Below are positions 5,896 to 56,433 of a DNA stretch of 64,000 nucleotides, piece by piece. Source of the stretch: Guillardia theta CCMP2712 (Eukaryota; Protista; Cryptophyta); assembly GCF_000315625.1 (NCBI RefSeq), contig NW_005434479.1:19599-83598 (forward strand), in the 5' to 3' direction. The translations under genes and the position numbers were made by a program. The notes under the pieces are model-generated. The model searched no databases, was not told the DNA's origin, and saw nothing but the letters and a program-made list of their open reading frames with translations. Positions within the stretch are counted from its first letter, which is position 1; every line of letters starts with the position of its first letter.

Positions 5896-7231
5896 CTTGC
5901 TTGCAAGTAGACTATGGGTAAGGGATGGGAGAGCACGAGTGTGTGAGGGAAAGATGGAAGAAGATTCTGCTGTTAAGGGTTGTTTGAGCTAGATATATAG
6001 ACACGGGGGGAGGCGCTAGAATACCAGGGGTGGTGACACTGCCTTTGCCCTCGTACCCTACTATTTCCTCCTCGTGCTTTTAGTACCGGTTCATTTCTAT
6101 GCGAATTGTTCTTTATGCGTAGGGTAGTTGAAAGACATTTGGTGTGATGGAAAGGCAGTTGTGCAGTTGATGGGGTAGTGGGGGTGCCAGGGTAGTATTA
6201 CGAGGGTGGTATCTGTGGGGTGCGCTCGACTCGAGCGAGCAATTGCATTGTTCCTTCTTGGGAGGGGGTAGGGTGATGAGGGAGGGCGTAGGGGTAGGTA
6301 GTCATTTTATTGATTACCCCTACAATATCGGTGAACTATGGGGGTATTTGACTCATTTGTTGGAACAGGAGGGTGTGAGGAATGGTGTTGAAGATCGATA
6401 CCTGGGGTGGGTAGTTGGGGTTGAAGCGTGAGCAGCGATGAGCTCTCCAGGGCTCCGAGCGGATTGAGACCACGGGTACCACAATCTGGTACAGATTGGG
6501 GTGGTGGTGGTCTTAAATATACCAGGGGTATCATAATATTTACACGACCTGGCATGAGCCATGTCTTCTATATGATTTGTTGGGATTGTGTACCCCTCCT
6601 TTGATAACACTTTCCTCTTTAAGCTCTGGTTAGCCCTCCCATGCCGTGACTGATTTGAATCGTCACGGAAAGTTTGGGCAAGGACTCTTACCCACCCCTC
6701 CATAACCAGATTCTAGAGGTACCAAGGAGGATCTCTGTAATCACCAGGGTCTATTTCGAAGAGTTGCATGTTTGGGACATGAAAATAGGGGTCGACACGG
6801 GGTACAGTGTTGAAACGTTGCTAAAGAGGTATATTTCGATTTGACCATCAAGGTCTGATGGTATCTCTTTACGAAACGAGATGTTTTCATATCAAGAGAT
6901 CACGTATCGGCACTGGGCTCCGGGATACCCTCTTCGCTCGGAGCACGGTTTCATAAAAGTCCGCCCCAGATATTACACTTGGGCAGAGAAGACAGAAACT
7001 AAACCGTATAGTTCTGTCTTTTGTAGTCTCGGGCTCGCCTCCGGTCAGTGCAAACGAAAGGTAAATCTATTAGAAGACAACCTGCCTCAGAGGACATATA
7101 GAACGTTTGATAAGACAGCAATTTTCTTGAGGATATGATGAGGGGAGTTCGGCGAAGACAGCCCAGTAGCTCTTGCGATGCGGAACTCACCAAGCTAGAC
7201 GCCTACTGAGGTCCTGGGGTTGATGTGGGGG

Positions 7232-7286
7232 GAGAGGTTGAGCAAGTTAGAGAGGTTGAGTAAGTCAGAGAGGTTGAGCAAGTCAG
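7232..7286. repeat. 18-bp tandem repeat x3 (GAGAGGTTGAG(C/T)AAGT(C/T)A)
   Basis: Seen directly in the sequence. Confidence 0.8.
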
Positions 7287-7329
7287 TTGGAGCGGCGCCG
7301 ATCGGGGATCTCGAAGACAGAGGGTCATC

Positions 7330-7700
7330 GATGAGCTTGTGAGGTACTGCGGTCATTTCGGAGAACAAGAGGGCGAGTTTGTACAACATGTGAATAAACG
7401 ATGATGTCTAGCAGTTGAACATGAATTCTGCTGAATGCATGTGAAGTTTGGGGAACGTGAGACGAGGTTGTCATATAGCGCGAAACAATTGTATCGATGA
7501 CTTGTGTTTTACTTGAGTCCAATACGAACAAGTGCCAGTGGCCATGTTCGAAATGGATTCATGCGGGGATTCAGTACAGAAGACTCATGGCATCTTGGTC
7601 TTCTTGGAATGAAGAGTGTATCAGGATTCTTGAGAGCGAGTGAGCCCATGGCGACAGGAAGAACATTCATTCAATGATAAGCATCATTGCAGAGCTTGCA
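7330..7700 (-). pseudogene. Degenerate Ulp1-like (C48) cysteine protease remnant, possibly transposon-derived
   Basis: Minus-strand pieces in shifting frames read NDAY..., HFEHGHWHLFVLD (catalytic His motif H-W-x-L-x-V-x-D) and IQQN...NC, in the order expected for C48, broken by stops and frameshifts. Confidence 0.35.
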
Positions 7701-7809
7701 CTGAAGGGCAGTCTCAGCATGATTCATGTGAGGAAATCACATATCCGAGAATGTCCCCTCCTACTCTCTCCTGCTCTTCACACGGGTTGCATTCCTGACT
7801 GGCAGCGCG

Positions 7810-10800
7810 TCAAACTCGCCTGTACTGGATGAGAAACTCCGGGTAGGCCTGTCGGCGATCGTAAACGACAAACTCTCGATGCCACTGCAGGAAGGACCCT
7901 GGGTGGGTCTCCCTTGTCAGAGCTATAACGGAGTCGAAGAGCCGGGAGTCAGAGCCAGCAGGAGGTCGCCGTTGGTTGGTCATCTTCGCCGTCGTCTCGT
8001 AGGGCGACCCCAAGGCTGCACGCACCAGGAACATGCAGCACAAGCCGTCAGCGTCAGGCGTGCAGTACTCGTCGCTCTTGCTCGAGTTCTCTGCTAGGTA
8101 GACTCCTGCTCCCAAGTGCCCCGACAGCTTCGAGACGCGCTCATCGAGCCCGTAGCCCGAGGAGAGGATCACGTCAGTCACTTCGTGCTGCGTGCCATGG
8201 AAGAGGAAGACCTCGTTGCTCAGCTGGTCTCCCAGCAGCTCCTCCCTCATCCAGTCCCTCCAAGTGCTCACTGCACTCGTCGGGTGCTGCTTCCCCTGCT
8301 CCATCATCGAGTTGCCGATGCTCTTGCGCTGCAGCGCGTACGCCGACCACAGGTTCTTGTCCTCGACCCGGAAGACGCGGTCCACCAGGAACCCCTTGTG
8401 TGTGCAGCCTCGGTTGTTCCTGCCGCGCCCGATGCACTGCTGCTTGCAGGTCGAGGTCATGAGCTCTTGTATCTTCTCCCTCCACTCCCGCGTCACGTCC
8501 ACCTTGGTGCTCGTGTGCTGCAGACTCTCTACACTGACGTGCTGCCAGTACAGGGGAGGGTCGAGGACCGCGCGGTGGTTGCCGAGCAGCAGCTTCTTTG
8601 ACGTCAGGGTCTTGCGCTCCTGCTCTAGGTCTGCCTCTCCTCTCCTTAACACCTTGAGATCCTCCAGTACTTGCTCCTGCTGGGCGTTCACCTGGGCCTC
8701 CAGCTCGTCGAGCTCCTTCCTTGCCTTTTGCAGCTGCTCTCTCCGTCTCTTGTCGTCGGCCTCGAGCTCTTTTCCTCTCTCCAGCATCTCCTTGCGCTGC
8801 AGAAGCAGCTGCCTCTCATCCGTGCGCAAGCTTTCCCTCCTTGCGGTGACACACCTCTCCTGCTCCCTGAGCTTCTCCTGCCGTACCAGCAGCTCCGCGC
8901 ACATTCGCTCATGCTCCTCGTGCTTCTGCTTCTGCTGCTTCTCGAACTGCTCCATCTCTCGGATCGTGGAGCGATAGAAGTAGGGATGCGTCAGCGCCTC
9001 CGCAGAGGATGGTCGTTGCTGAGGATCACTAGACTGCAGCCTGCCGATGAGGTCGATGGCCTCTTGGTTTCCACCTGCGAGCACGAGGCTGCTGCTGTCT
9101 TGCTCGACGTCCTGACTTGTCTCGGCGAGGACTTCAGTCATGACGATGCCGTACGCGTACATGTCCGACTTGTGCGAGGCTCGTCGCTCCTCGGTCGTAG
9201 GGAGCAGCAGCTCAGGCGCGAGGTACTGGAGGGTCCCGACCACATGAGTCGCCGTTACTGTCGCCACCAGGTCCCTCGCGCGGTCCTCCTGCTCCTTGGA
9301 GACGTCGAAGTCAGCGATCTTGGGCTCGGCGTGCTCGTCCACAGAGGACATGAGGATGTTGTCAGGCTTGATGTCGCCATGGATGATCCGGTTCTGCCGG
9401 AGATGCTCCAACCCTTGCAGCACTTGCATCAGCACCCTCTGCCTGTGGATCCTACCCGGCCTGACTCGCTTCATCCAGCTGCTCAGACTCCCTCCGAGGA
9501 GGAAGGGCATCTTGAGGTATCCTTTGACCTCCCTGGGGCCATGCTCTCTGTGCTCTTCAGTGAAGGCGCTGCACAAGGTCATGAGGTAGGGATGCTTCAG
9601 GCGACGGAGGATGCTCGCTTCCTTGAGGAAGTGCCGTCGGTCCCTCGGGTCCTCGGAGAGGCTGAACTCTTTGATCACAAACTCCTCCTCCTCCTGCCTC
9701 ACGTGCAGCACGTTGTGTCGCGCCCCTCGCTGCCCCGCCATGGACAACCGGCTGATGAGCTCGAACATGTCCATCCTCTCGTGCCCTCCCACGTCGACGT
9801 CCAACGATCCTCTCACTTGGCTCGAGTACTCCGGGTAGTGGAGGAAGAGCTTCCACAGCACCTGCTCCAACTGCTCGAGCTCTCGTGCCGTAGCCACTTT
9901 GTCCCTCCTCAGAGCCTTGAGCTTCTCCTCGATCTCTTGGCAGTCCAGCTCCTTCCGCTGGTTCACGCGCAGCATGAGCAAGAGCTCGGAGTGCTTATCG
10001 TTGAGATCCTCCAGCCTTTCCTGGAGGTCATCGCAGGTTTCAAGGATGGGTTGAGGATCCTGCAAGCTCCGAAGCTGCGCCAAGTTGGCCTGCACCGCCT
10101 GCACGTCTGTGATGTGGTCGAGGCAGTAGAGCCTGCCGTTGATCCATGACAGCGCGTAAGGCAGCAACGACCAGATCCTCTCATAGGGGAACCGCTGGAT
10201 CAGGCACGAGTCAGTGAAGACCTCCTCCTCGCACAGGAAGGCTTTTTCCAGCTCCAGGTGGTCCTCAACGATCGCCTTGTGCAGCTTGCTGGCCTCCTTC
10301 AAGCTGCGCAAAGAACCCTCGCCCTGCAGCATGCGGCCGAGCTCGAAGAAGCAACCGGCATATCGGTCCGCGATGCTCCTCCTCTCTTTCTTGCAGGACG
10401 CCAGTCTTTGACTGACCATGTCAAGCCACTGCGACACCCTTGTTGCCGCCTCGCTTAGTTGTGATCGAAACTCCTCTGTCGTAGGAGGGCTGGTAGCAGG
10501 AGCATCGTCCTGCTGCTGCCCGCACTCCAACAGCGTCTCGATCTTTCTGGCAGACTCTTGGAGAGCCTGCTTGTACTCGACCAGGAGCGAGGAAAAGCTT
10601 GAAGGGTCGAGGGGGTCGAGCATCTCTATCAGGCTTCTGCTTTCTTGCATGAGCGTCCTCCGAACCTCTTCGCGATACATTATCGCTCCTGTCAACTCTT
10701 CTGACCTGTCAGCCTTCCCTTGCAGCCTTCTTCGCTTCCCTCCGCTACCAACCGCACCGGCCCAGCTGTCGTCAGCGAGCTTCCTCACAACCGCTTGCTG

Positions 10801-11164
10801 ACTGTCGAGTAGATCTTGCAGGCTTTTCACTTGCGACCAGGCGAACTGAACCTCATCGTGCGCAACATGACTTGGCTGGTCCAGCAGAGCCATCAAGGAT
10901 AGCAGCAAGTTGTGTCCTCTCACTGCCTTGGACAACTTGCGACTATCAAAGTTGTTGGTCAACTCTCTCAGCGCCTCTCTCTCTCCATCCTCCTTCTTCC
11001 TCTCCATCGCTGCTTGCTGACGCACTGCAAGGCGCAGCACAGCCTGTAGAGAGAACACTTGTTCTGGCTCATGTTGAAGATTCTCTTTCTGTGCTGAACG
11101 AGTTCGATGCGGTGCTTGCACCTCTTGTTCTTCTGACTTGCGCTGACGACAAAGCTGTGCGAGT
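7810..11164 (-). CDS. Helical N-terminus + protein kinase + coiled coil + PARP catalytic (ART) domain fusion; large terminal exon, with small upstream exons likely to ~11.7 kb
   Basis: 1103-aa ORF. Kinase (~9770-8970): VIK lysine, alphaC E (FLKEASIL), HGDIKPDN, DFD, GTLQYLAPE, SDMYAYG. PARP (~8550-7810): NEVFLFHGT, GAGVYLAENSSKSDEYC, EFVVYDRRQAYPEFLIQY. Confidence 0.9.
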
Positions 11165-11792
11165 CTGCATCAAATCAGAGTCAAGGGGTGTGGGAGAAGC
11201 GCCGGGCTGATCTCAAGTGTGACACAAACATGATGACCTCACTCACTCTCTCAGGTCTCACGCCCTGCTTGCCTCCCCATCATCTTCTGGTTGTGATCGG
11301 AAAACCGTCGCTCGGTCAGCTTCTACTCTAATCTTGCAACACGATGATTGTCGTATCCTCTATCTCTGCTTACATTTGCCTTGGATTAAGCTTGGCGTTG
11401 CTGTTTCCAAGAGACTGATTAATCAGACTGTCTCGTCAAGGAGAACGTTCAGAAGTTTTTCAATGCTCTTGTCAGTGCATACCCATCTGTACCATCTGTG
11501 CTTGATGTTCTAGCCGGGATCTTTCCAACCTGAAGCAGCAGAAGAAGCAAGTCAAAGGTCACAAGTCTATGGCCGTTCTGTCACCTTGGTTTTCTTCTGA
11601 GGCTACAGTGAGGGCATGACATTACGTCAGTTTGTGTTTGACATTGCATGTGAACCTCTCACGCGCAACTTGAAGGAATCCGAATCCACTTCGTCTCCGA
11701 GCTTGTCAAAGTCAAGGTCAATCTCTCCCTGCGAACATTGTTATGATCAACATGGTCGTTAGCATCGTCATCTCCATCTTTGTCATCTTTTC

Positions 11793-11862
11793 CATCATCA
11801 CCACCATCACCACCATCACCACCACCACCACCACCACCACCACCACCACCACCACCACCACC

Positions 11863-11896
<34 letters not shown>

Positions 11897-11906
11897 TCAT
11901 CATCAT
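11793..11906. repeat. (CAC)n/(CAT)n microsatellite abutting an assembly gap
   Basis: Seen directly; followed by the N run 11907-12122. Confidence 0.95.
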
Positions 11907-12355
11907 NNNNNNNNNNNNNNNNNNNNNNNNNNNNNNNNNNNNNNNNNNNNNNNNNNNNNNNNNNNNNNNNNNNNNNNNNNNNNNNNNNNNNNNNNNNNNN
12001 NNNNNNNNNNNNNNNNNNNNNNNNNNNNNNNNNNNNNNNNNNNNNNNNNNNNNNNNNNNNNNNNNNNNNNNNNNNNNNNNNNNNNNNNNNNNNNNNNNNN
12101 NNNNNNNNNNNNNNNNNNNNNNTCTTGAATGTCGGATCGGAAGCCGCCGAGCGGCCTTGGCTTCAAGTCACGGTTTCGGAAGGCCCGCCGGGCAGCCTGT
12201 TTCCGGGCCGCGGCGGATCCGATCAGGGCACTGGCGCGGCGGCACTGAGACTCTGAGAGTCACGGGTGACGGCAAGGAGTTGAGTAAACGGCAAATAAGA
12301 CTCTCACATTAGCACCCCATGGGCTACACCTGTCTCTGCCCCCCGGCGGCCTCAT

Positions 12356-12530
12356 TTTGACCAACTTTGACCGTGGTCAAATGCAAGGGGATAGGTCACG
12401 CCGGGGTCAAATCGATGTAAACCGAGGTCAAATTAGAGTCAAACCGAGGTCAAAGAGTGAAAGAGGGGTCGAAGTGGTCAACCAGCGGTCAAATCTAAGG
12501 GGTTTACACGGAATAAAGGGGGTATAAAAC
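12356..12530 (+). promoter_or_regulatory. Cluster of GGTCAAA/TTTGACC motifs plus a TATA box upstream of the small gene at 12756
   Basis: Palindrome TTTGACC-gt-GGTCAAA at ~12366-12381, several further GGTCAAA-like copies to ~12493, and TATAAAA at ~12523. Confidence 0.45.
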
Positions 12531-12755
12531 AGTAAGCATGTGCCTTCATGTTCACAATACCGGCGGATCGCACGACAGCCCTTGCTAGCAGCACACAAGC
12601 GTCATAGTTTCGTCCTGCTGATTCCTGCACTTGCTCTCGAGCCTCAACCTCCTTACTTCAACGCTCTCTTCTGCTTCCGCAACTCTTCGTGGTGCTGGAG
12701 CTTGTCATCGGAATCTGAACTTGTTCTTGCGCATTTCCTTCAACTAGAATCGACC

Positions 12756-13055
12756 ATGCAGCGTATTCAACTTGCCGTGTATCAGGCCAATCTCTTTCGT
12801 GCCATGAGAAGAATGTCTTCCATTGCACTGGAAGAATCCGGGTCACGTGGATTTGGCTTGGACAAAACTAGAGTTGCTCAACAGGGCAAGAACTTCCAGA
12901 CGTATCATTCTTCTAGCTTTTCCCAGCCATCCATCAAGGAAGCTCGTGTGCAGTCGAAACAAGACCCTGCCACTCCTCTCAAACAGATTATACCTTTGAA
13001 GTCGGCGGAGGAGTACAAATCGGTCCTTCGCAAGTTCAATCAAAGTAGGCAGTAG
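12756..13055 (+). CDS. Small intronless protein with C-terminal PLxQIIPxKxxxEYxxxLRxFNxSR motif (paralog A)
   Basis: ATG at 12756 within ORF 12540-13055; C-terminus PLKQIIPLKSAEEYKSVLRKFNQSRQ matches the ORF at 15762-16178. Confidence 0.65.
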   Translation: MQRIQLAVYQANLFRAMRRMSSIALEESGSRGFGLDKTRVAQQGKNFQTYHSSSFSQPSIKEARVQSKQDPATPLKQIIPLKSAEEYKSVLRKFNQSRQ

Positions 13056-13635
13056 ATGTGTATCATAGCAGCCCTGTACTTTCATCTTGTATTATGAATG
13101 AACGTTGTTCTTTTCTGATTTCGACATTACTCGGTGGATCCTGATCTAATTTGAAAATCTCTGACGTTTCAGAATGACACTTGAAAGTAATTGATTACGC
13201 CAGTGTTTGGTTCTGCCTGGATTCTGTTGAGATCGTTGCAAGGTTATGTTATGTACTCTGCAAATCAAGCTGAAACGTCAAGTATGTCAGCGGGCGTGAA
13301 GTTCTATAGCAGTCAGCAACACATAGTCAAAACCATCATACGTATGGCTTTGTAGTAAGATACTGCTGTAAGATATCAACTCAGATCATTAGCGATGTGA
13401 TTTCGACTGAGTTCTGTCTAGAATATTGTATGCACTAGTGCTTCAGCAATCTCATCCCTGAAGTATGCATCCTTTGTAGAATCATCTCAAGAAGACATGC
13501 AAGTGCTCATGCAATTGGGTGTTCTTCCTGGTAATCAAGTATATTCCAAACAAAGAATACAAAGAACAATGAAATCAACTAACTATCAATAACAAGCTCA
13601 TGCGCGCTGCATGCGAGCTAAAGAATAATTAAAAT

Positions 13636-17737: not shown

Positions 17738-19870
17738 CCAAGAAGTAATTCTACCTCATTGATGTTATCAAATCGTTTGAGTTGGCGCTGAAGTTCCAAC
17801 GAGAGGACGAGAAGAACATCTTCAATCTCTGAGGCGTCCTCGACCACAGAAATCCCTATCCCCTGTTCTCCTCCCCCTCCTTCATCTCCTCCCTGAGACC
17901 TTTCGTCTCTTTCTAGCGATAAAAGCGCTCTTTCCGTGTACTAGAAACAGCTCAGTGGTTTGGATTGCAAACCTGTTAAATCTCCAGCTCATCCCTCCTC
18001 CTCGTCTTCCTCCTCCTCATGCATCCATTACATGTGTCACTCCCTGACCTTCTTTCTCCTTTCTTCCTCTTCCTCCCCCATTTCTGTCCCTCTCCTCTTC
18101 ATACCTTACTGCTATCCTCCTGCTCCAATATCTCCAAGACGAGCTTCCTGGGGATGGCGGGGATGGAAGGCGGCAGGCTCACTCGGTCCTCTTCATTGTT
18201 CTGCTCCACAAACCCAAACCTCGTGAAGATGGCAAGGTTGGGAACCTGCAGGAGGAGAACGATGGGGAGAGAGGGAGACGAAGAGGGAGACGAAGAGGGA
18301 GAGGGAGAGAGGATGTAAGAAGGGAGTTGAAGGTAATTTGCAAGTACGACATGCCAGACAAGACGAGGAAGAGAAGCAGGGGGAGCACGGGGGGGCGGGG
18401 GGAGAGGGGGGTAGAAAGGTGAGTGGGAAGAGCGCGCAGGAGGGGGAGAGGGGCAGGGTGTCAGCTGAAGAAAGGGGGCAGGAATCTCACATTGCGAGCA
18501 TAAGGATGGGTCAACTCTTCTCCGGCCTCGATGTCTCTGCACGCTTCTGCACAGATCCGATCGCCATGCTGGATGAGGCGACAGTTCGGCTCGCGATCGT
18601 GATTGAGCAGGTCGATGAAGGGAACAAGCCCTCCTCGCGACCTCTTCTTCCCATCAACCTTGTCACTGGATCAGGCACAGAGGTAGCAGCAGCAGCAGCA
18701 GCAGCATTCACCTGCTGATCCCAGAAGTGGAAGCATCTTGACAATACCTGATGAGGAATGAGAGATGGGCGGGCAAGAGTGTCGAGGAGGAAGGAAGGTA
18801 ACGACAGAGAGGGAGGGGGCGGCTAGGTGAAGAATGCTGACCATGCTGTTGGCCCAGAACAGCACAGGAGGGACCCCTCCCGTCCCCTTGAGCTTCTCCC
18901 ACGCAGCTCGCAGCTTCGCGCGATGGTCAAGGAGGAGGAGAGAGACATGCGGGTCGACGGTTGCGAACTCCTCGAGCATGGCGCGGGTGAGGTTGGAAGG
19001 GATCTCCTTGCTGTCGGTGGTTGGGAAGAGCCACCAATACTCCGACCAGAAACCTTGACAGAAGTCATGAAGCATGTAGAAAGAAGAGGAGGAGAGAGGA
19101 AGGGAGAAGAAGGGAGAGGAAAGGAGAGGAAAGGAGAGGAGGAAGGAGACGTGCTAGTGGCAGTGGTGGAAATGTGAAGGATGGAAAGGAGGAAGAAGTC
19201 TGGGAGAAATGAGATATTGGAAGGATAGAGAGGGAGCTGAAGAGAGGAGGTAGTGAGAGGAGAGAGAAGGAGAGGAGAGGAGAAGGTAGTGAGAAATGAG
19301 GAAAGAGAAGGAGAGGAGAGTTTAAGCAGAGATCACCCGTGCCATCGAAAGCGGCTTTCTCAAGCACCTCCATCAGTTTGCCAGTCAAAGCGATCTCAGA
19401 GGTCCAGGCAATTCGCTTCTTGTCGAGGTCGCTTATGTTTCCTGCCACACGTGCTGTCAGAGAGATTCAAGAGAGAAGAGAACATGCCTGCTGCATCTAT
19501 CACCACCTGCCCGTCCTCGTACTTCACATCCTCAAGATCGATCTCGTGGAAGATGCAGAACTCCAGAGGAACAGCAACTGTTACATCCCCTGACGACAGA
19601 TGTTCAAAGTTTGAGGAGGCAGAGACATCGAGAAGAAGGCATTGACAAGGTCTCACCTGCCTTGAACGATCTGTTTGCGAACAACCCTCGTCCTCGCATC
19701 CCACTGTCAAGATCAGCATATACCTCCAAAGGATACTGCAAATGCACACAAGTCAGGGAGTCTTAAACATTGTTCACCATCCCACCTTGGAAAGAATCTC
19801 ATGAAACCTTTCCTTCGTCCTCTCTTCATCGGATTTTTTCATTTCTTGCTGATTTCATTCAACAAGGACC
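16323..19870 (-). CDS. SET-domain protein lysine methyltransferase (Rubisco LSMT/SETD6-like), multi-exon
   Basis: Spliced exons: GMRGRGLFANRSFKAG (~19660-19720), FWSEYWWLFP...FWANSM|VLSRCF, LVPFIDLLNHDREPNC...RDIEAGEELTHPY (~18490-18665), NLAIFTRFGF (~18200-18245). Both termini are approximate. Confidence 0.8.
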
Positions 19871-36179: not shown

Positions 36180-37698
36180 GCCAAATATTTCGGAAGCGAG
36201 TTATGTTGTACACACAACAAACATCTGGAAGTTATCATAGAGTTTTGTTGGGCGTGTCCGCATCAGCAGTTTTCTGCTCGATGGGAGGTGAGTTATCTCA
36301 GCTGTGTCTCATTGCATTTGAGTGGTCGAGCAGCAGGTGTGGCGTTAGCGGAGCACAAGGCAGCGGAAGATGCATTGGGACGAGATTCGAAAGAGGTTGC
36401 CTCATTTCTCTGCCCGCCCGTCCTCCTCGATACTGCCTCCTCCTTGCTTCTTCTCCTTCCGTTCTGCTACGTCTACCATTCCTATATTTGTTCTGGTGCT
36501 CTACGTCTTTTGCTCGCAGTTTTCTAGCATCATGTGCTAAGTTATGCTCACAGCAGCATCGTCCCCTGTCTCATCTGGTGCTGTGCTGGGGAGGAGGGCT
36601 GTCAGGTGAGCAGTGAGTCACGGATTTGGGAGCAAGGAGAGGGAGAGGGAGAGGGAGAGGGCGAGGGCGAAGACGATGAGGATGATGAGGATGAGGATGT
36701 TTCGAAGTGACATACTCGTTAGGTGCGTTGGGGATCGGAGAGACGAGAAACTCAGCAACACCGAAGCATGTGGAAACTCTTCCAAAGGTAATGCAGATGA
36801 TGGGCATTAAGGCGAAGAGCTGGTTTGTTATGAGTCTGTTGAAATCATTATTCAAGATGCTCATGGTAGAAAGAGTGATGGCAACAATGAAAGCAGTATA
36901 GATGCTCTCAAATATTTCACTTCGTTAATTTCATTCAGAGGATATGACTTTGTTGTTGTCTCTTTCAGGATGTCACTCAGGTCGATTGCGGCGATTCTTG
37001 GAGCGCATGTATTGCTGGGGACTGTGAGTGAATTTCCTTGTTCGAAATATGAATGATGGCGTACTGCCCAGCTCTTTACACCTGGGGAAAAGGACAGGAT
37101 GGCAGGCAAGTTGGTACAGGAGGGGAAGGGAGGGAGGAAGGATGCCAGACAAAAGGAAAGGCATGATGCTATTCGCCTTTCACAGATTGGGGCTTGGGGA
37201 GACTCTTGACGTTCTTTATCCTCAAAAAGTGAATCTTGAAGGTGAGTTTGTTCTCTTGCTCAAATCCTTTCTCCTCCTCCCCTTCTCGTATGCTCGTACT
37301 TGAACCTACTTTTACCCTCCTTCTCTCTCTCCTCAGTATTCGTCTTCGCTTCGTTTTCTCTCTCCGCGATCTGCTTATCGAGCTTGATGGTAGAAGGCTC
37401 GTGAGCGTATGACGCTGGGTTGCAGGTGTGACTTGTGTATCCGCTGGGCATCGTCATGCTGCTGCGATCGTGGGAGGAGGAGACGTTTTTGTGTGGGGAA
37501 GAGGGTTCTCCGGCCAGCTGGGGCTGGGAACCAACAAGAGTCACTTCACTCCGCAGGTACTCTGAAATTGCTCAACTCCATGCTGTCCTGACTATCACCT
37601 TCTTACTTGCCTGCCCTCCCTCTTCTTTGCTGGGTCTACCTGCTGTTTGGTCCTTTCGTGTTTCGCCTGAAACCTGCGCGACTGTCTCTTTTTCTCTG

Positions 37699-37767
<69 letters not shown>

Positions 37768-38892
37768 CCTGGTCTCTCTCTCTCTCTCTCTCACTCTCTC
37801 TAATTTCTTCTCTGCTGATCCCTTCCGACCTGTGTCAACTTCCTTGTCTAGCCTCTCTCTTTCCCCATGCCAGTGAAAGCATTATCCTGCGGGGGCTCTC
37901 ACTCTCTCTTCATCACCGAGGACGGGCGCCTGTACGCGACAGGAAGGTGAAGTCTGCGTCTCTTGTCGGCCCGCAACTTCTCAGCTCCTGACAGGGGCAA
38001 GGAGGGTCAGCTGGGAACGGGCAGCCAAGAGAGCGTGCTCTCACCGGTTGAAGTTCAGATGCCTGAGGGGTCGGGGCGGGTGAAGGCGGCAGAATGCGGG
38101 AAGGACTTCTCGGTGATCGCGACGGAGAGCGGGCAGGTTTTCACATTCGGCTCGGACGACTACGGACAGCTGGGATTGGGGCAGTTCGCACGGTGACCCC
38201 CTGCTCCTGCTCTGCTGCTGCTGCTGGACTTACGCTCTTGGAAGGTACGCCATGACGCCGAAGGAGGTTGCGGTGCTGGCAGGAAAGAACGTGAGGAGCA
38301 TAGCAGCCGGTTGACTCCTGTCCTCCTCTCAGCCTGCACCTGCTCGTCTCAACTTCCATGCACAGGAGACTATCACGCCGCTGCCGTCACGTCTGACGGC
38401 AAACTGTACACGTGGGGTTACGGAAGATCCGGCCAGGTGAGCTTGTTGGGCTTCTGCTGGAGATTTCTCTTAGCGTAAGTGTCGCTGCCCCAGCTCGGCA
38501 ACGGCAACACAGTGGACGTCTCTCTCCCTGTCCTTGTGCGGGAGCTGCAGAACCTTCGGGTGCAGTCGGTAGCTTGTGGATGCGACCATACCGTCGCGGT
38601 AATTGACAGGGGATTGAAGGAGCAACTGATGCTCATCTCCTCTCAGGTTCTCGAGTCAGGAGAAGTGTTTGTGATGGGAAGAGGACGTGAGGGGCAGCTG
38701 GGACGGGGAGACATTGTCGAGAGCCCAGCTGTGTACAGAAGCGTTCCTCTTCAGGTGACCTTCCTTGCTCAAGAGAGAATTCGCGTGAGAACTTTGTCTT
38801 CCCCTTCCTCCCACGACTGTCTGATGCCTCCCCAGGTCCAGCAGGTTGCATGCGGCACCAGTCACACGCTTGCTCGAGGAGTCCGAACATGA
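36180..38892 (+). CDS. RCC1-repeat (beta-propeller) protein, multi-exon; 5' end uncertain
   Basis: Repeated RCC1 units: LCWGGGLSG|ALGIG, VSAGHRHAAAI...FVWGRGFSGQLGLG, LSCGGSHSLF, FTFGSDDYGQLGLG, YTWGYGRSGQ|LGNG, VACGCDHTV, VACGTSHTL. Confidence 0.9.
37697..37800. repeat. (TGTC)n/(TC)n intronic microsatellite
   Basis: Seen directly. Confidence 0.9.
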
Positions 38893-39726: not shown

Positions 39727-42450
39727 ATGAGCACACCGGGAGGGGACGAGAGGCAGGAGGGATACGACGGGGAGTCGAACAACTCCTCCAACTCTTACGC
39801 GACTGTCGCGTCCTCTGGTTCCAACGTCGCGCAGAGGCTCATGGAGCTTGATGGTGGCGCTCAGGAAGCGCAAGACGAGGCAGTCACCGACAAGTCGGCG
39901 TCTCCCTCCATGCACCAAGGAAGCGCGTCAGTGCTGGTCCCTGACTTCAGCTTCCGGCCTAGACCCCGATCATCATGCAGCCACTCGCCAAGGAAGGAAG
40001 ACGCGCCGACCAGACGTGAGGAGGTTGTCGAGAAGGCTCAGCATGTTCAGGCGCATCTGAGAGCATGCGGATTCGAGGGGTTCCCGATGAACGTGGAGGA
40101 CAAGGGGCTGAGCTCGGACGTGCAGGACAGATCAGCCACCATGAGCGTGACTGAGGATTTCATGGCGCAGCTGCTGATGAAGCTGGAAGAAGTGATTGTT
40201 CAGTACAAGAAGCGAGGAGTTCTGGTAGAGGACTTCTTGACTGGGGACAAGTCTCCGTTGAAGCACAAACAGGGGCAGGAGGGTGTTGGTGAGAATTCTC
40301 CCGAGAGCTTCGCTGACTCTCGTTTCTCTCCTCTCACAGACTCATCCAACCTCTTCCTCCTCCATGACTCCGAGAGGTCGAAGAAATCTTCTCCTGACAG
40401 CCACCACCGCAAGGCGTTCAACCAGTGCCAGATCGACTGGAGCTGCACGCAACCTGACCAGGGGCAGCAAGCGCGGGAGGACGAGCTGTTGCTGAGGATC
40501 GATGAGATGAGGAGGAAGGAAGCGAAGCTCATGCACATCCTGCATGAGAAGGAGCAGATGCTGGAGCAGTGTCAGGAGAGGCTGCGTATCATGCTCAAAG
40601 AGAACGATAGACGGAAGGAGACTGCTCTCAAAGTGGTCCGGGCAACTCAGATGAAGCTGGGGGGGAAAGAGAAGGCGACTGCTGGACTAGACCCGCGGAC
40701 AGCCTCACTGATCCATGAGCTGGCGGAGATGAACCATGCGCTGGAGAGAGACAAGGGCAGGCTGGAAGAAGAGAACAAGTCAGTGATGGCGAGGCTTCGA
40801 GACATGGAGAATGCGATGACTGTGCCCTTGAGGGGCAGGGACCAGGAGGCTGTAAACTTCGGGCGGCTGCGAGAGGAGCTGATCAAGAGCCAGCGGGTGA
40901 TGGAGGAGTTGTCGGACAAGATCAGGCAGAAGGAAAGTGAAGCTCAGGTGGCGAACTCGCGCAAGGAGTCGATCCTCGCGTCCTACGAGCAGCTGCAGGA
41001 GAGGTTGAAGATGATGGAAGCCCAGCACGAGGAAACGCCGAAGCCGGAGTATGTTGACTCGTTGGAGAGGGCGATGTGGAGCATGGAGAAGGAGATGGCG
41101 CAAATCAAGCACAGGCTGAAGAGCGACCTCAATGTGTTCAAGGACCTCGGCCTTCTCCTCGGCACGCAGGACCACAGCAATTTCATCCCCACCATCCGAG
41201 ATCTGAAGAAGAAGGCGGCGGAGATGGAGGTTATGGCGGGAAGAATCCATGAAGTCTTCATGGAGCTGCCCATGGAGGAACGAGTTTCTTGCGGTGAAGT
41301 GAAGAGCGAAGACTGGGACTTGATGTTGACGTTGCTGGCTGAGAGAAAATATGGTACAAAGATCACGCTCGATGCTCGGAAATTTCAGGAGGAGCAGACA
41401 CAGGAACAGGAAAATCTCAGGAGGAAGGAGGAGGACCAGAAGCTGGTCGGGAAGGAGGAAGAAGCGGAGGCGATCGCTGTGCTTGCTGAGATCGAAGCTG
41501 TGCTTTCACAGCGCGTCAGCCCCTTGGCCCTCAACGCCATCAAAGCCGGCAAGAAGCATGGCGATGCTCACGTGCTCGGCTCTCAGGGCAAGGAGGTGGT
41601 GGAGGAAGTGAGAGACTTGGTAGCGTACGAGCGTTGCTGTCTGGCGCGTACATTTCTGGAGGGTGAGGAGGAGGAGGAGAAAGAGGAAGAGAAGGTCTGC
41701 AGAGAGCTGCTGATGCAGGTCCAAGCTCTCCTTGGGGTCGACTCTGTCTCGAGCATCCTCCCCAAGATCTCTTGGATGAGGGAGATGGCCAAGGAAGCAG
41801 ATCGTGCTCGCGCGTCCCTGCTTCTCATGCTACAGCTGCCGCTCGATGCTTCCTGGCAAGACTGTATGCTGGCTCTCAAGCGGGTCGGCACTGATTCGAA
41901 GCCTCTGGCTCCGGATGAACCTCCTTCAACTCAGGAAGTCGCAAAGACTCCGAGCCCCGACAAGCAAGTACGACCCGTGGAGACTGAGCCTTATAGCACA
42001 AAGGAGGAGGAGCAGGAGGAGCAGGAGCGGGAGCAGCAGGAGTATGATCATGAGCAAGAGAAGAAGGTTCATTGCGTCAGACCAGCGTCAGCGAGGAGGC
42101 AGAAGCCGGTAGCCTGGGAGCTCAGGTTGGATTCGCACAGGAGCATGAGCATGCGCGAGGACATGTCCAAGGGAGCGCCTGGGGCTCACCATGACCTGAG
42201 AAGGAGCCTCCAAGTTACGCTGGTTCCCTTACCCGAGGAGGACCCCAGCTCGTCTTCTCCCCGGGCTTCCCAGGGAGTCTTGCAAGAAGCCTGCGGTCGC
42301 CACCTCCTCGCTCGCGCGCGCATGTCGGCGGGTACGGCACTGCAGCCTCCTCGTCGCTGGAGGCCTCGGCCGGTGAGCTCGACCAGCCTCGTGCAGGCTG
42401 CGGGGAAGAATGGGACGAGAACGTCGCAGAGGATGAGAAGTCAGCGGTGA
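39727..42450 (+). CDS. Large coiled-coil protein, CEP70-like
   Basis: 907-aa ORF with long heptad regions. N-terminal VQAHLRACGF and C-terminal VQALLGVDSVSSILPKI...ASLLLMLQLPLDASW resemble the conserved CEP70 segments as recalled; not searched. Confidence 0.55.
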   Translation: MSTPGGDERQEGYDGESNNSSNSYATVASSGSNVAQRLMELDGGAQEAQDEAVTDKSASPSMHQGSASVLVPDFSFRPRPRSSCSHSPRKEDAPTRREEVVEKAQHVQAHLRACGFEGFPMNVEDKGLSSDVQDRSATMSVTEDFMAQLLMKLEEVIVQYKKRGVLVEDFLTGDKSPLKHKQGQEGVGENSPESFADSRFSPLTDSSNLFLLHDSERSKKSSPDSHHRKAFNQCQIDWSCTQPDQGQQAREDELLLRIDEMRRKEAKLMHILHEKEQMLEQCQERLRIMLKENDRRKETALKVVRATQMKLGGKEKATAGLDPRTASLIHELAEMNHALERDKGRLEEENKSVMARLRDMENAMTVPLRGRDQEAVNFGRLREELIKSQRVMEELSDKIRQKESEAQVANSRKESILASYEQLQERLKMMEAQHEETPKPEYVDSLERAMWSMEKEMAQIKHRLKSDLNVFKDLGLLLGTQDHSNFIPTIRDLKKKAAEMEVMAGRIHEVFMELPMEERVSCGEVKSEDWDLMLTLLAERKYGTKITLDARKFQEEQTQEQENLRRKEEDQKLVGKEEEAEAIAVLAEIEAVLSQRVSPLALNAIKAGKKHGDAHVLGSQGKEVVEEVRDLVAYERCCLARTFLEGEEEEEKEEEKVCRELLMQVQALLGVDSVSSILPKISWMREMAKEADRARASLLLMLQLPLDASWQDCMLALKRVGTDSKPLAPDEPPSTQEVAKTPSPDKQVRPVETEPYSTKEEEQEEQEREQQEYDHEQEKKVHCVRPASARRQKPVAWELRLDSHRSMSMREDMSKGAPGAHHDLRRSLQVTLVPLPEEDPSSSSPRASQGVLQEACGRHLLARARMSAGTALQPPRRWRPRPVSSTSLVQAAGKNGTRTSQRMRSQR

Positions 42451-47141: not shown

Positions 47142-48640
47142 TCATATAATTTTCGTTGCCATCTCCAACCCTCGAGCAAAGCAGTGAAGTTTTCCGTCGA
47201 CGGCCATTCCTTGGGCGATCATTTCGTTAAGTTGACCCCTGAGGTTCTGTAGAGGAAAACGCCTCAGTTCTCCCACTCCCCTCCCTTCCCCTCCCTTCCT
47301 CGTTTCCCTTCTCTGCTTTTCCCTCTTCTCTATTCATTTCCCAGTTCATCCCCTTTCTTCCTCTCCCTTGGTTCATTCTTGGTCTCCTCTTCCTCGGCTT
47401 GGTACTCCCCGTATTCCTCCAACGAACCTTGAGAGGCAGTCGGAGCACTTGGATCGCTTCTCCTTCCTCTGCTACTCCGAAGAGCTTCATAGACGTGAGC
47501 CAGAGCAAGTTGGAGCGAGAAGAGCGAGCAGCAACACCTTCCCTTCCTCTCCTCTCTTCAACGACGCTCTGTTTTCTTCCGTGTCCCCGTCAACCTCTAC
47601 AATCTGTGACCAGTCTAGTCAGCACTCAGCACATCTCTTTCTCATCTTTACGATAAGTTTGCATGCCGCGTTGGTGATGCCTGGGTCATTGCAAAGAGCT
47701 GTCTCATCCTCATCCAGCACCTTCCCAGCTCGCAAGCCAGTCTCCTCCAGCAGCTCGCGGGTCTGGGGGAAGGAGGTGAGGCAGGAGGAGAGGTGGATCG
47801 TCTTACCGCTGCTTCCTCCACCTTCTCGTTGGGATCCACCAGACCTGTGCAGCTGAGGTAAGCAAGACGAGCAGGACAAGAGCAGCTGGATGATGCGAGC
47901 AGAAGGCAAGAGGAACGCGAAAGGAGGAGGAAGCGATCAGGTACCGGCAGGCGCCTCTATGCATATCTTTCCTAGCGCAGGACGGAATTGAGTGATGAGG
48001 ACAACTTCGGAGTCAAAGCCTGAGCCACGATGAGCTAAGGAAGAGAGGGAGAGGAAAGGACCTGCGCGGCGAACGATAGGGAGGATGGCAACAGCACTGG
48101 CTTGCGGAGACATAAAGGGGGGGCCTATCAGCTGTGAGGGAGTCTGAAGAAGAGTGAAGAGGGAGGTGAGAGATTGAGATCGAGCAGGGAGAGAGCAAGA
48201 AAGACGAGTGGTCCAAGGGGAGAGGGGAGAGAGAGGAGACCAGGAAACGAGCCTGACCTGAAGGGCTGAACCCAGGACGCTCAGCCGCATCCCACTGCAT
48301 GACGCCTCCTCTTCCATCCCTCCAAGTCAGTTTGACAAGCTGCAGCCATCTGTAGCAGATGTGTCATGAGAAGTTGCGAGGAGAAGCTGGCGTATGAGAT
48401 CAAGAGAAGGAACAGTAAAGAATGATGAGCAGCACGTTGGACGTTGAGGAAGTGACAGCCGAATGTCTACAAATTGAGAAGCAGGATCAAAGATGAGGAG
48501 GCGAGAAGTTGAGAGGAAGAGCAAAGGAGATACCTTGTGGATGCGATGACTTCCTTTGCAACGATTTGTGGCGGATGTTTGTCATCAGCTGTAACATCAT
48601 TTACTTTCATGGTGAATGCTCTTCTTTCTCTTGTCGCCAT
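47142..48640 (-). CDS. Nudix hydrolase, NUDT5/YSA1-like ADP-ribose pyrophosphatase, multi-exon
   Basis: QWDAAER, AVAILPIV, LITQFRPALGKICIEAPAG|LVDPNEKVEEAA|TRELLEETG (Nudix box), DPGITNA, EEGEAIQV, VDGKLHCFARGL. Confidence 0.85.
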
Positions 48641-54423: not shown

Positions 54424-56433
54424 CTACAGGGCCTTGCTGATTTCTCGTACTGAATGTATCTTCTCATCAATTCCATTCAGAATCGTTGGAAGATCAAAAA
54501 TCTCATCCTTCCCCTCCTCATCCTCATCCTCCGGTTCCTCTTCCTTGTCTTCTTCCTTTTGTTTGTTGTCCTCGTCTGCAGCGCCTTCCTTCCCACTCTC
54601 TATCATAAGAGCAGCCCTCGCCTCCTCTCGAGCCTTGAGAGCCTCTGCCTCTTTCTTGGCCTTCCACTTGTCTTTCATTCTCGCGAAGAATCCGGATGAG
54701 AAAGCTGCGATGAGGAACAAAGTGCAGAGAGCGAAGAGGCCCCAGATCTCCCAGATGTCCATCACGTTACCTCCATCTGCCACCACCTCTGTACATGTCA
54801 AGTCATTGGCTCTCAGACCGTAAGACTGCAGGTAGTCGTCTACTGCTCCGGCCTCAGTCGCTTGCAGCATTGCCGAGCTCAAGGGATGGTAGAAGATGGA
54901 GGAGTAGGGGAACCCAAGGCCGTAGCCGTTCACGTGAAAACCATCGCCGATGGTAACGAGACTACATTTGCCAGTTCTGCTGTAACGGTTGTTGAGCTCG
55001 TTATATACGACAGGCCCGTCGTAGAAGAGCGCGTCTGGTCCGCTTCCTGCCCTGGCGCTGGGGTAGAGCCTCCCGCACTGCACGATGTCGAAGATTCCAT
55101 ACGAAGCCCCAGTTGTCAATTTGCATGGATTCACCGATGTGCTTGACACCAGTGGTTGGCCGTTGGTGTAAATGGAATCCACGCGATCAGCAGTGAAGAT
55201 GGAGATGGTGATCTTGGGATCCTGCTGCATGATTGTTTGCAGATAGTTGAACTGATCCGATGGAATCATTGTGGTCGTCGAGGTCCCAGCGACGAACTTG
55301 CCAAGATAGGGAGGCTGTGGGTCTCTCGGGTTCCAACTTGGCCCGAGCACAAGAGCGCTGAATTGACCAGACGTGAAGGACTGAAAGTCTTGCACACTGA
55401 CCACAACAGCCTGCTGGGTCAGGAAAGCTGCGATGGCTCCAGTGTAGGTGGCAGTGATTAAGGTGCCGAAGAAGAGATGCGAGAGGTAGACGATTCGTCC
55501 TCCCAGTGTGAATGCATCCTTATCTGGAGCTGCACAAAGCGTACAGATCACCCAGTACCAAGTGTCGAAGAACATCGCCTTGCCCTGCCGGATGTTCTCG
55601 ACGTTGTAGGGGGACTCGATCATCAGCAACGACACAAACACAACTATACACTCCAGCAGAATCGCTCCCCACAGCCAACCTGTGAAGGGAAGGAAAACGT
55701 TGACAAGACCGTCTATGGGAATTTGAGGCGGGATCGGGCGCTTCACTATGTGTTGCTGATACTGATAGTAAGACGACGTGAAGGAAAGAAGATCTGAGAA
55801 TCGTGAAGCTACTGGAATCGCGCCTGCAACAAGATCTGGGCCTGTGCTTGCACAAGTGGGATCCCCGATGCGCGTGCAGGACGTCACGTTGCTGGGCCCT
55901 TTGTAGGCCTTTGCCGCGGCCGCGCATCTCTGCCCATTATAGGTTGTATTCCAAGACGAGGGTGGGAGTGCAGAAAATGATCCCTGACACACCTGACCAG
56001 CAGAGTCAGTTGAAGCAAGCAGGTGTCAGTACTGGACCATCTCAACCGCAGCATCAGGGGAAGTGGGGTTGACTCGAGGGATGTACCATTCGAAGACAAC
56101 TGATTCCGAAACGCCGCTCGCTCGGCACATGCTCTTCAAGTTGTTCAAGACCTCGTTGTTCATAAACTCGTACGTGAGGCCGCCTCCATTGATAAAGGCT
56201 GTTGCTGGGCAAAGCTGGTTGATGCACTTGGTCGTGTCCACGTTAATAAGTGGAGGGTAGTGATGCGTGGCTATTCGGAATTTCTTCCCACAATGCGCTG
56301 TGTTGTAAATGTTCGCAGGTACCAAAGACCTTCGCATCTCAAAACGATACAAAGATGTTGTGGAAAAGTTTTGACAAGAAACCAGTGAAGAGAAGACTAA
56401 AAAGGTCCATAAAAGATGAACTGCAGTTTTCAT
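54424..56433 (-). CDS. Ionotropic glutamate receptor-like channel (signal-S1-M1-P-M3-S2-M4), no amino-terminal domain; one short intron ~55993-56031
   Basis: Signal peptide MKTAVHLLWTFLVFSSLVSC; S1 FRIATHHYPPLI...DLVAGAIPVASRFSDLLSFTSSY; M1 FLPFTGWLW; M3 GGRIV...ITATYTGAIAAFLT (variant of SYTANLAAF); S2 with Cys and GYGLGFP; M4 IWGLFALCTLFLIAA. Confidence 0.9.

Follow-up and report, generated by a model that had tools for sequence, protein, structure and literature searches.

As a rule, different proteins carry out phosphorylation and ADP-ribosylation. In a stretch of 64,000 nucleotides from the cryptophyte Guillardia theta CCMP2712 (the window; assembly GCA_000315625.1, scaffold JH993159.1, window base 1 being record base 19599), a single reading frame appeared to encode both a protein kinase and a poly(ADP-ribose) polymerase (PARP) catalytic domain. 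A preliminary description of the locus, made from the sequence, had proposed a single-chain signalling or defence effector. The locus therefore raises the question of whether such a gene is genuine, whether both catalytic centres are intact, and what their union in one chain might serve. We consider it probable that this is a genuine nuclear G. theta gene and that its product is a bifunctional enzyme, one that makes two kinds of protein modification, with the kinase module coupling recognition to an effector. Judged from sequence comparison, the gene belongs to an uncharacterised family that occurs in many protist lineages and combines the same kinase module with PARP, HECT or RBR-like enzymes.

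Two catalytic domains in one reading frame

The frame occupied positions 7810–11121 of the minus strand (stop codon at 7810–7812) and ran for 1103 codons, short of its 5' end, with the kinase and PARP domains in one uninterrupted translation. It remained open upstream over 11122–11169 (minus strand), as far as an in-frame TGA at 11170–11172. The chance of a stop-free run of this length was approximately (61/64)^1118, roughly 5e-24. The query in all searches was this single uninterrupted exon, with no spliced model joined to it. Both Pfam domains (PF00069 and PF00644) scored far above their curated cut-offs, and the catalytic motifs were all present and conserved across the family, which agrees with the earlier reading of a single chain with both catalytic centres intact.

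Residues 450–712 (8986–9774, minus strand) formed a Ser/Thr protein kinase domain, as indicated by Pfam, by a motif table and by the invariant columns of alignment A4. Pkinase (PF00069) matched residues 472–715 (2e-38; 132.8 bits, cut-off 31.7), and the full-length AlphaFold2 (AF2) model (predicted local distance difference test, pLDDT, 77) had a kinase fold at 450–712. The kinase motifs noted earlier (VIK, HGDIKPDN, DFD and APE) were all found in the translation: K484 of VIK, the alpha-C Glu E501, D583 and N588 of HGDIKPDN, DFD at 604–606 and APE at 635–637 were kept. The catalytic loop (H581-G-D583) was non-RD. The motif DFD (9304–9312, minus strand) stood in place of DFG; it was invariant in alignments A1 and A4 and was shared by most members of the module in the large search described below. 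The Gly-rich loop read AGQRGARHNV instead of the canonical GxGxxG, and the family pattern was G..G.RH.V or shorter, with a conserved R-H. In every kinase-bearing member of alignment A2, a hydrophobic residue and then Ser came after DFD, the catalytic loop was non-RD (H-G/C/L/F-D), and the beta3 Lys, alpha-C Glu and APE were kept.

Among the solved structures listed as matches, the closest kinase was PDB 9gmp_A, annotated as an 'uncharacterized protein (Map kinase kinase-like protein)', with 188.6 bits; the next match reached 156 bits, and p38, IKK-beta, CDPK, CaMKII, GCN2, Rad53 and Aurora followed, a mixture of CAMK, STE and other kinases. The 9gmp_A chain shared the HGD non-RD loop, an MPxYxxGSL motif and the activation-segment pattern with the window protein, but it has DFG rather than DFD and consists of a 285-residue kinase domain alone. 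No publication on 9gmp_A was found. The preliminary description had likened DFD to the autoinhibitory variant of the MNK kinases. DFD at the start of the activation segment is indeed shared with MNK1 and MNK2 (MKNK1/2), whereas here it goes together with a non-RD HxD loop, a degenerate Gly-rich loop and a pre-kinase [FY]PE helix. No MNK chain was among the 60 best solved matches listed, with either the single sequence or the family profile as the query. Because DFD characterised the protist kinase module as a whole and no MNK appeared among these matches, MNK-style autoinhibition can serve here only as an analogy.

The unusual loops bear on an alternative in which the kinase domain, like the pseudokinases of RNase L or MLKL, is a scaffold that binds nucleotide and only regulates or dimerises the C-terminal domain, so that ADP-ribosylation is the sole catalytic output. 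The family-wide departure of the Gly-rich loop from GxGxxG, with its conserved R-H, would fit such a scaffold, as would DFD for DFG. However, one or more of the beta3 Lys, alpha-C Glu, catalytic Asp, Asn, Mg-binding Asp and APE are usually missing from pseudokinases, and the columns for these residues, the DFD Asp included, were invariant or nearly so in A4, which comprised 14 divergent members. MNK kinases, moreover, are active despite DFD. We regard a pseudokinase as improbable.

The C-terminal residues 854–1103 (7813–8562, minus strand) formed a tankyrase-like ADP-ribosyltransferase (ART) domain according to Pfam, PDB searches and AF2. The PARP catalytic domain (PF00644) matched residues 902–1101 (1.5e-20; 74 bits, cut-off 26.7), and the ART fold was predicted with confidence at 870–1103 (pLDDT 80–95). 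The H-Y-E triad matched tankyrase-2 residue for residue. On the minus strand, H975 (FLFHGT; 8197–8199) aligned with LFHGS of tankyrase-2 and was invariant in alignment A5, and the same two alignments identified Y1008 (GAGVYLAENSSKSDEY; 8098–8100) and, together with the motif table, E1083 (HREFVVYD; 7873–7875). The segment GVYLAENSSKSDEY held Y1008 and a second Tyr; the second, nicotinamide-stacking Tyr (SKSDEY) likewise aligned with tankyrase-2 and was conserved in A5. All three ART motifs that had been pointed out before (FHGT, GVYLAENSSKSDEY and REFVVYD) were thus present. The domain carried a family-specific N-terminal extension (PPxYW...VDVT...TC...GxGR) and was devoid of a helical regulatory subdomain.

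On the window protein, the A5 profile scored 373.9 bits over residues 852–1103, which assigned the C-terminus to a PPxYW subtype of PARP. Run against PDB, the same profile scored highest with TNKS2 (114 bits), followed by PARP15 (104), PARP12 (97), PARP14 (80), PARP3 and PARP10 (both 65) and PARP1 (58). With tankyrases 1 and 2 (PARP5a/b) the window protein shared H-Y-E, the GxGxYFAENSSKS motif, the second Tyr, the absence of a helical regulatory subdomain and an ART domain placed directly after a potentially self-associating module (SAM in tankyrase, a helical spacer here). It differed in its PPxYW extension and its upstream kinase. Neither Ank nor SAM was matched in the window protein at E-values up to 0.1 in Pfam, and AF2 showed only helices and the kinase upstream of the ART domain. 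No zinc-binding Cys/His quartet between the Y and E motifs was conserved in A5; this segment was shorter, and the alignment to tankyrase broke there. Because ankyrin repeats, a SAM domain and the conserved zinc motif were missing, the ART domain, although closest to tankyrase, is not a tankyrase. The WGR domain and helical regulatory subdomain of the PARP1–3 clade had no Pfam match either, and PARP1 and PARP3 scored 58–65 bits versus 114 for tankyrase. The kinase-PARP layout is absent from canonical animal PARPs, as the preliminary description had remarked.

The same description had taken H-Y-E as the triad of poly-ADP-ribosylating enzymes. The triad was complete, but for polymer synthesis it is a necessary and not a sufficient condition: since PARP3 and PARP4 carry H-Y-E yet make mono-ADP-ribose, a mono- or poly-ADP-ribosylated product cannot be read from it. 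The triad Glu was replaced in Hanusia phi P0004 (by I, giving H-Y-I) and in P0098 (by Q, giving H-Y-Q). H-Y-I and H-Y-Q are the pattern of mono-ADP-ribosyltransferases, and paralogs may differ in their product.

N-terminal module and helical spacer

Residues 24–445 (9787–11052, minus strand) formed an all-helical N-terminal module by AF2 and BLASTP, including a conserved SFP motif and the pre-kinase helices. AF2 modelled residues 60–440 entirely as long helices (pLDDT 79), which bears out the long helical N-terminus described earlier, and BLASTP detected homology to Hanusia (2e-36, 26% identity). The pre-kinase helix pair ended in a Y-P-E-Y motif at residues 429–432 (9826–9837, minus strand), of which P430 and E431 were nearly invariant in the family (alignments A3 and A4). 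The module matched no Pfam family in the scan of the window protein, and the N-terminal regions of ten relatives gave only sub-threshold Pfam matches, none of them usable (e.g. MCAfunc at 0.016 in P0097). A Foldseek comparison of the N-terminal model with PDB returned only generic long-helix proteins (E 0.05 or worse, TM <0.2) and assigned no fold. A word search with the N-terminal 465 residues was empty and also uninformative, as low-complexity words probably swamped the candidates and BLASTP did find the Hanusia homology.

Between the kinase and the ART domain lay a charged helical spacer of 141 residues (713–853; 8563–8985, minus strand), delimited by AF2, composition and a heptad test. It was rich in E, R and K (41% together) and contained one Pro and three Gly. 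AF2 predicted two long helices in it (713–779 and 805–853) at low pLDDT. The heptad excess was 0.35 versus 0.27 in shuffles and was reached by 6 of 200 shuffles, a modest signal. The spacer is either a coiled coil or a single alpha-helix. The preliminary description had seen a coiled coil of about 130 residues here, through which oligomerisation would couple the two activities. The charged helical segment itself was recovered, whereas a coiled coil is not obligatory and the distance from the kinase end to the PARP start ranged from 0 to about 200 residues in relatives. Because of this variable length and the modest heptad signal, oligomerisation through the spacer cannot be the conserved coupling mechanism; the comparison with relatives suggests a variable tether rather than a conserved coupling device.

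Cryptophyte relatives and the age of the fusion

The best relative was Hanusia phi P0001, with 62% identity. Both domains were also present in three further H. phi paralogs, P0004, P0100 and P0086 (P0086 and P0003 share a 90% cluster), and all four of these H. phi proteins were transcript-derived. Identity to the window protein was 47% for the 'complete' MMETSP transcript P0002 and for P0085, a longer form of it; the 90% cluster of these two contained two G. theta gene models. P0085 mapped unbroken and with 100% identity to G. theta scaffold JH992993.1 (L001:3247–6486), where it was intronless over 3.24 kb. G. theta thus encoded at least two intron-less kinase-PARP paralogs, on JH993159.1 and JH992993.1, and Hanusia at least four. 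In the kinase-module tree, the window protein was sister to Hanusia P0001 within a six-member cryptophyte clade, with full support at both nodes. Rough dN/dS values for the two G. theta paralogs (Nei-Gojobori; synonymous sites near saturation, dS above 1) were 0.28 and 0.25 in the kinase and PARP domains, and 0.44 and 0.55 in the N-terminus and the spacer, respectively. Both catalytic domains appear to be under purifying selection, and from the near-saturated synonymous sites the duplication of the G. theta paralogs is estimated to be old.

The fusion is not an artefact, because it recurs in the intronless G. theta paralog, in H. phi transcripts with both domains and in distant relatives. A long frame of this kind might still be a retrogene-like copy that is young, mobile or recently expanded, or two genes joined by an assembly or annotation error: it is uninterrupted over 3.3 kb where most neighbours are split into exons, and an assembly gap lies 0.8 kb upstream. 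Other evidence opposes this. The paralog on the other scaffold is intron-less too, yet only 47% identical and saturated at synonymous sites; the closest relative, an ortholog, belongs to a different genus; the fusion occurs in transcripts of other species; and the downstream region held no match to a transposon-related Pfam family and had no second copy in the window. The window also holds other single-exon genes of about 900 codons, and long intron-less genes were not unique to the kinase-PARP locus, because a 907-codon single-exon gene without a Pfam match lay at 39727–42450 (plus strand; P0112 in the reference proteome). A retrogene or artefact is accordingly very improbable.

The preliminary description had also suggested recent mobility or expansion, with a transposon-type relic directly downstream. 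Neither was borne out. Between 5900 and 7810, no open reading frame (ORF) of at least 57 residues had a Pfam match, no dispersed copy of the region occurred in the window and the reference annotation had no gene model. Recent expansion is contradicted by the nearest paralog (47% identity, dS above 1) and by the nearest relative being an H. phi ortholog. The only repeat found in 5900–7810 consisted of three tandem copies of an 18-nucleotide unit (GAGAGGTTGAGCAAGTYAG) at 7232–7286, downstream of the stop codon. An origin from giant viruses was considered and, on the present data, rejected: viral contigs held only generic kinases (22–30% identity) and distant PARP cores (26–31%), and none matched both domains.

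A protist kinase module with exchangeable partners

The pre-kinase [FY]PE helix, the non-RD catalytic loop and DFD were family traits. We here define the 'pre-kinase helix + DFD kinase' family by a helix pair that ends in [FY]PE directly before the kinase, a non-RD HxD and DFD[VIL]S. The window protein fits this definition, with one continuous profile match over positions 2–396. The module profile (A4) was run against 1.84 billion representatives and the best 150 matches were used, which undercounts the family. With a continuous match from the pre-kinase helices through the kinase end as the mark of a true member, approximately 37 of these 150 best matches were members, and many of the others were proteins with several kinase repeats. 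Many family members came from metagenomes.

Kinase-PARP proteins of the window type were found in Paulinella micropora (Rhizaria), Naegleria lovaniensis (Discoba), Ancyromonas sigmoides and many metagenomic contigs. A family-type PARP formed the C-terminal effector in 35 of the 49 members examined, HECT in four and an RBR-like domain in two. Three of the four HECT-bearing members had a named source (Gloeochaete, Soliformovum and Anaeramoeba). The two members with a Cys-rich, RING/IBR-like C-terminus and no PARP were P0009 (771 residues, from a JGI metagenome), whose C-terminus had no Pfam match, and P0203, whose IBR match was sub-threshold. The N-terminal modules were diverse and included LRR (P0162, P0212, P0223), LRR with filamin (P0187), WD40 (P0190), RCC1 (P0152), ankyrin (P0249), FYVE (P0219, P0250) and Sel1 (P0195), besides the helical bundle of the window protein. 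Effector labels clustered on the kinase-module tree (8 changes versus 14.1 in shuffles), with PARP spread over the whole tree. The PPxYW PARP subtype also occurred without a kinase in P0098. A further PPxYW-type H-Y-E PARP was present in Neobodo designis P0008 (787 residues), where it followed a C2 domain and an Ala/Glu-rich coil of approximately 250 residues; the subtype thus appears to pair with a membrane-binding module as well.

A 2013 paper (PMC3673628) mentions protist kinase-HECT proteins, from Naegleria and Ectocarpus, in one sentence. Compared by that description only, these resemble the window protein as protist chains in which a kinase is combined with a protein-modifying effector and differ in that the effector is HECT, not PARP. 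The kinase-HECT proteins of Gloeochaete, Soliformovum and Anaeramoeba fell inside the kinase-module family. No paper describing kinase-PARP fusions was found, and the database entries for kinase-PARP proteins bore only automatic names, such as 'Poly [ADP-ribose] polymerase' in UniRef or 'hypothetical protein'. Citarelli et al. (2010) listed 'Guillardia theta' among species without PARP genes; since the entry was placed under red algae, we take it to refer to the nucleomorph and not to the nuclear genome. What is new here is the conserved kinase-PARP architecture and the modular family around it, kinases and PARPs themselves being well known.

Proposed coupling of recognition to protein modification

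In the bifunctional enzyme that we propose, the kinase module would act as a common switch or adaptor between an N-terminal recognition module and a C-terminal protein-modifying effector. The enzyme would either phosphorylate a bound target and then ADP-ribosylate it, leaving a dual mark, or gate its ART domain by autophosphorylation. In the cryptophyte branch, the input would be the helical bundle and the output protein ADP-ribosylation. The spacer would tether the ART domain and may dimerise it, without being essential to the family mechanism. RNase L and IRE1 offer an analogy only: in their chains too, a repeat-type or other sensor is followed by a kinase-fold switch and then by a catalytic effector at the C-terminus. 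The homology does not extend past the kinase fold, their effector is a nuclease and not an ART domain, and activation by dimerisation is not part of the likeness.

Several points weigh against this proposal. The coupling of the kinase and ART activities is something that we purely infer. The N-terminal module gave no hint of a ligand in the word search, in Pfam scans of relatives or in Foldseek. ATP binding could be atypical, given a Gly-rich loop that is non-canonical across the family. The word search found no transcript-derived protein of at least 607 residues identical to the window locus. The kinase-module tree was unrooted and came from a quick search, and the direction of effector swaps is not given by it.

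A different account, close to the defence role suggested at the outset, makes the protein an effector of innate immunity or programmed cell death: a sensor would detect infection or stress and switch on the kinase, and the ART domain would deplete NAD+ or ADP-ribosylate viral or host targets. The tripartite, conflict-type layout of the relatives, with repeat sensors (LRR, WD40, Ank, Sel1) and exchangeable effectors (PARP, HECT, RBR-like), is suggestive only. Each cryptophyte has several paralogs (at least two in G. theta and at least four in Hanusia), and the kinase is non-RD, a type over-represented among pattern-recognition receptor kinases. The window copy, however, had no recognisable sensor repeat, and neither a virus association nor conflict-type gene clustering was seen around it, the neighbours being Mpv17/PMP22, SET and a 143-residue acidic protein. 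Viral contigs never held the fusion, just generic kinases and distant PARP cores. Purifying selection on the catalytic domains and a clear Guillardia-Hanusia ortholog pair also differ from the rapid turnover that is usual for immune effectors. An immune or cell-death effector is thus rather unlikely.

In a broader version, the module would define a class of single-chain receptors that is ancient and pan-protist. A kinase would here replace the NTPase of NLR/STAND proteins and link interchangeable sensors (LRR, WD40, RCC1, Ank, FYVE or the helical bundle) to interchangeable protein-modifying effectors (PARP, HECT or RBR-like). The G. theta protein would then be an immune or stress receptor that triggers ADP-ribosylation or NAD+ consumption. 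This version is doubtful.

Gene model and neighbourhood

The reference annotation at the locus consisted of only a 193-residue 'PARP' model at approximately 7819–8397, leaving the kinase and the N-terminal 700 codons without a gene model. Exact look-ups found no models on record that start at M39 or that correspond to the 165- or 164-residue C-terminal pieces. At the paralogous locus, the annotation was similarly limited to a 117-residue kinase fragment (L001:4831–5181) and a 162-residue PARP fragment (L001:6001–6489).

The single giant exon of the preliminary description held for at least 3.3 kb, the 5' end excepted. The earliest in-frame ATG was codon 39 (11005–11007). A short 5' exon is likely, because homology to the Hanusia paralogs begins before this codon, at approximately residue 24. 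The upstream open continuation contained a candidate splice acceptor (ttgatgcag before A, at 11165–11166 on the minus strand), and the earlier upper boundary of the locus, 11164, was the base following ttgatgcag. Searches by tblastn with the Hanusia and G. theta N-termini against 10900–13600 gave no significant 5' exon, within the limit set by the gap at 11907–12122. A candidate start, ATGATG at 11278–11283, was rejected as a 5' exon, simple donor/acceptor pairing being out of phase. Approximately 0.6–0.8 kb upstream of the gene, a (CCA)n/(CAT)n microsatellite (11756–12122) ran into the assembly gap, a run of 216 N at 11907–12122; this region may hide the 5' exon or the promoter.

The neighbours of the kinase-PARP gene are ordinary, with the 143-residue acidic protein downstream and a 99-residue ORF, the Mpv17/PMP22 gene and the SET-domain gene upstream. 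At a distance of 25–40 kb were a NUDIX hydrolase gene (47175–48640, minus strand) and an RCC1-repeat gene (36544–38892, plus strand). ADP-ribose can be degraded by NUDIX enzymes and RCC1 is the N-terminal module of family member P0152; at such a distance, a link of either gene to the kinase-PARP gene is probably coincidence. Elsewhere in the window, a 522-codon ORF (54424–55992, minus strand) contained a ligand-gated ion channel domain (Lig_chan, glutamate-receptor type; 8.7e-10).

Implications

A conserved natural fusion of this kind would offer a direct system for studying cross-talk between phosphorylation and ADP-ribosylation. For the PARP field, it adds a tankyrase-like H-Y-E domain in a wholly different regulatory context. 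The fusion would escape surveys based on the reference proteome of G. theta, which represents it at the one locus by a 193-residue fragment and at the other by fragments of 117 and 162 residues. More widely, the association of the same module with HECT, RBR-like, LRR, WD40 and ankyrin partners points to a general, so far undescribed way in which protists may wire recognition to protein modification.

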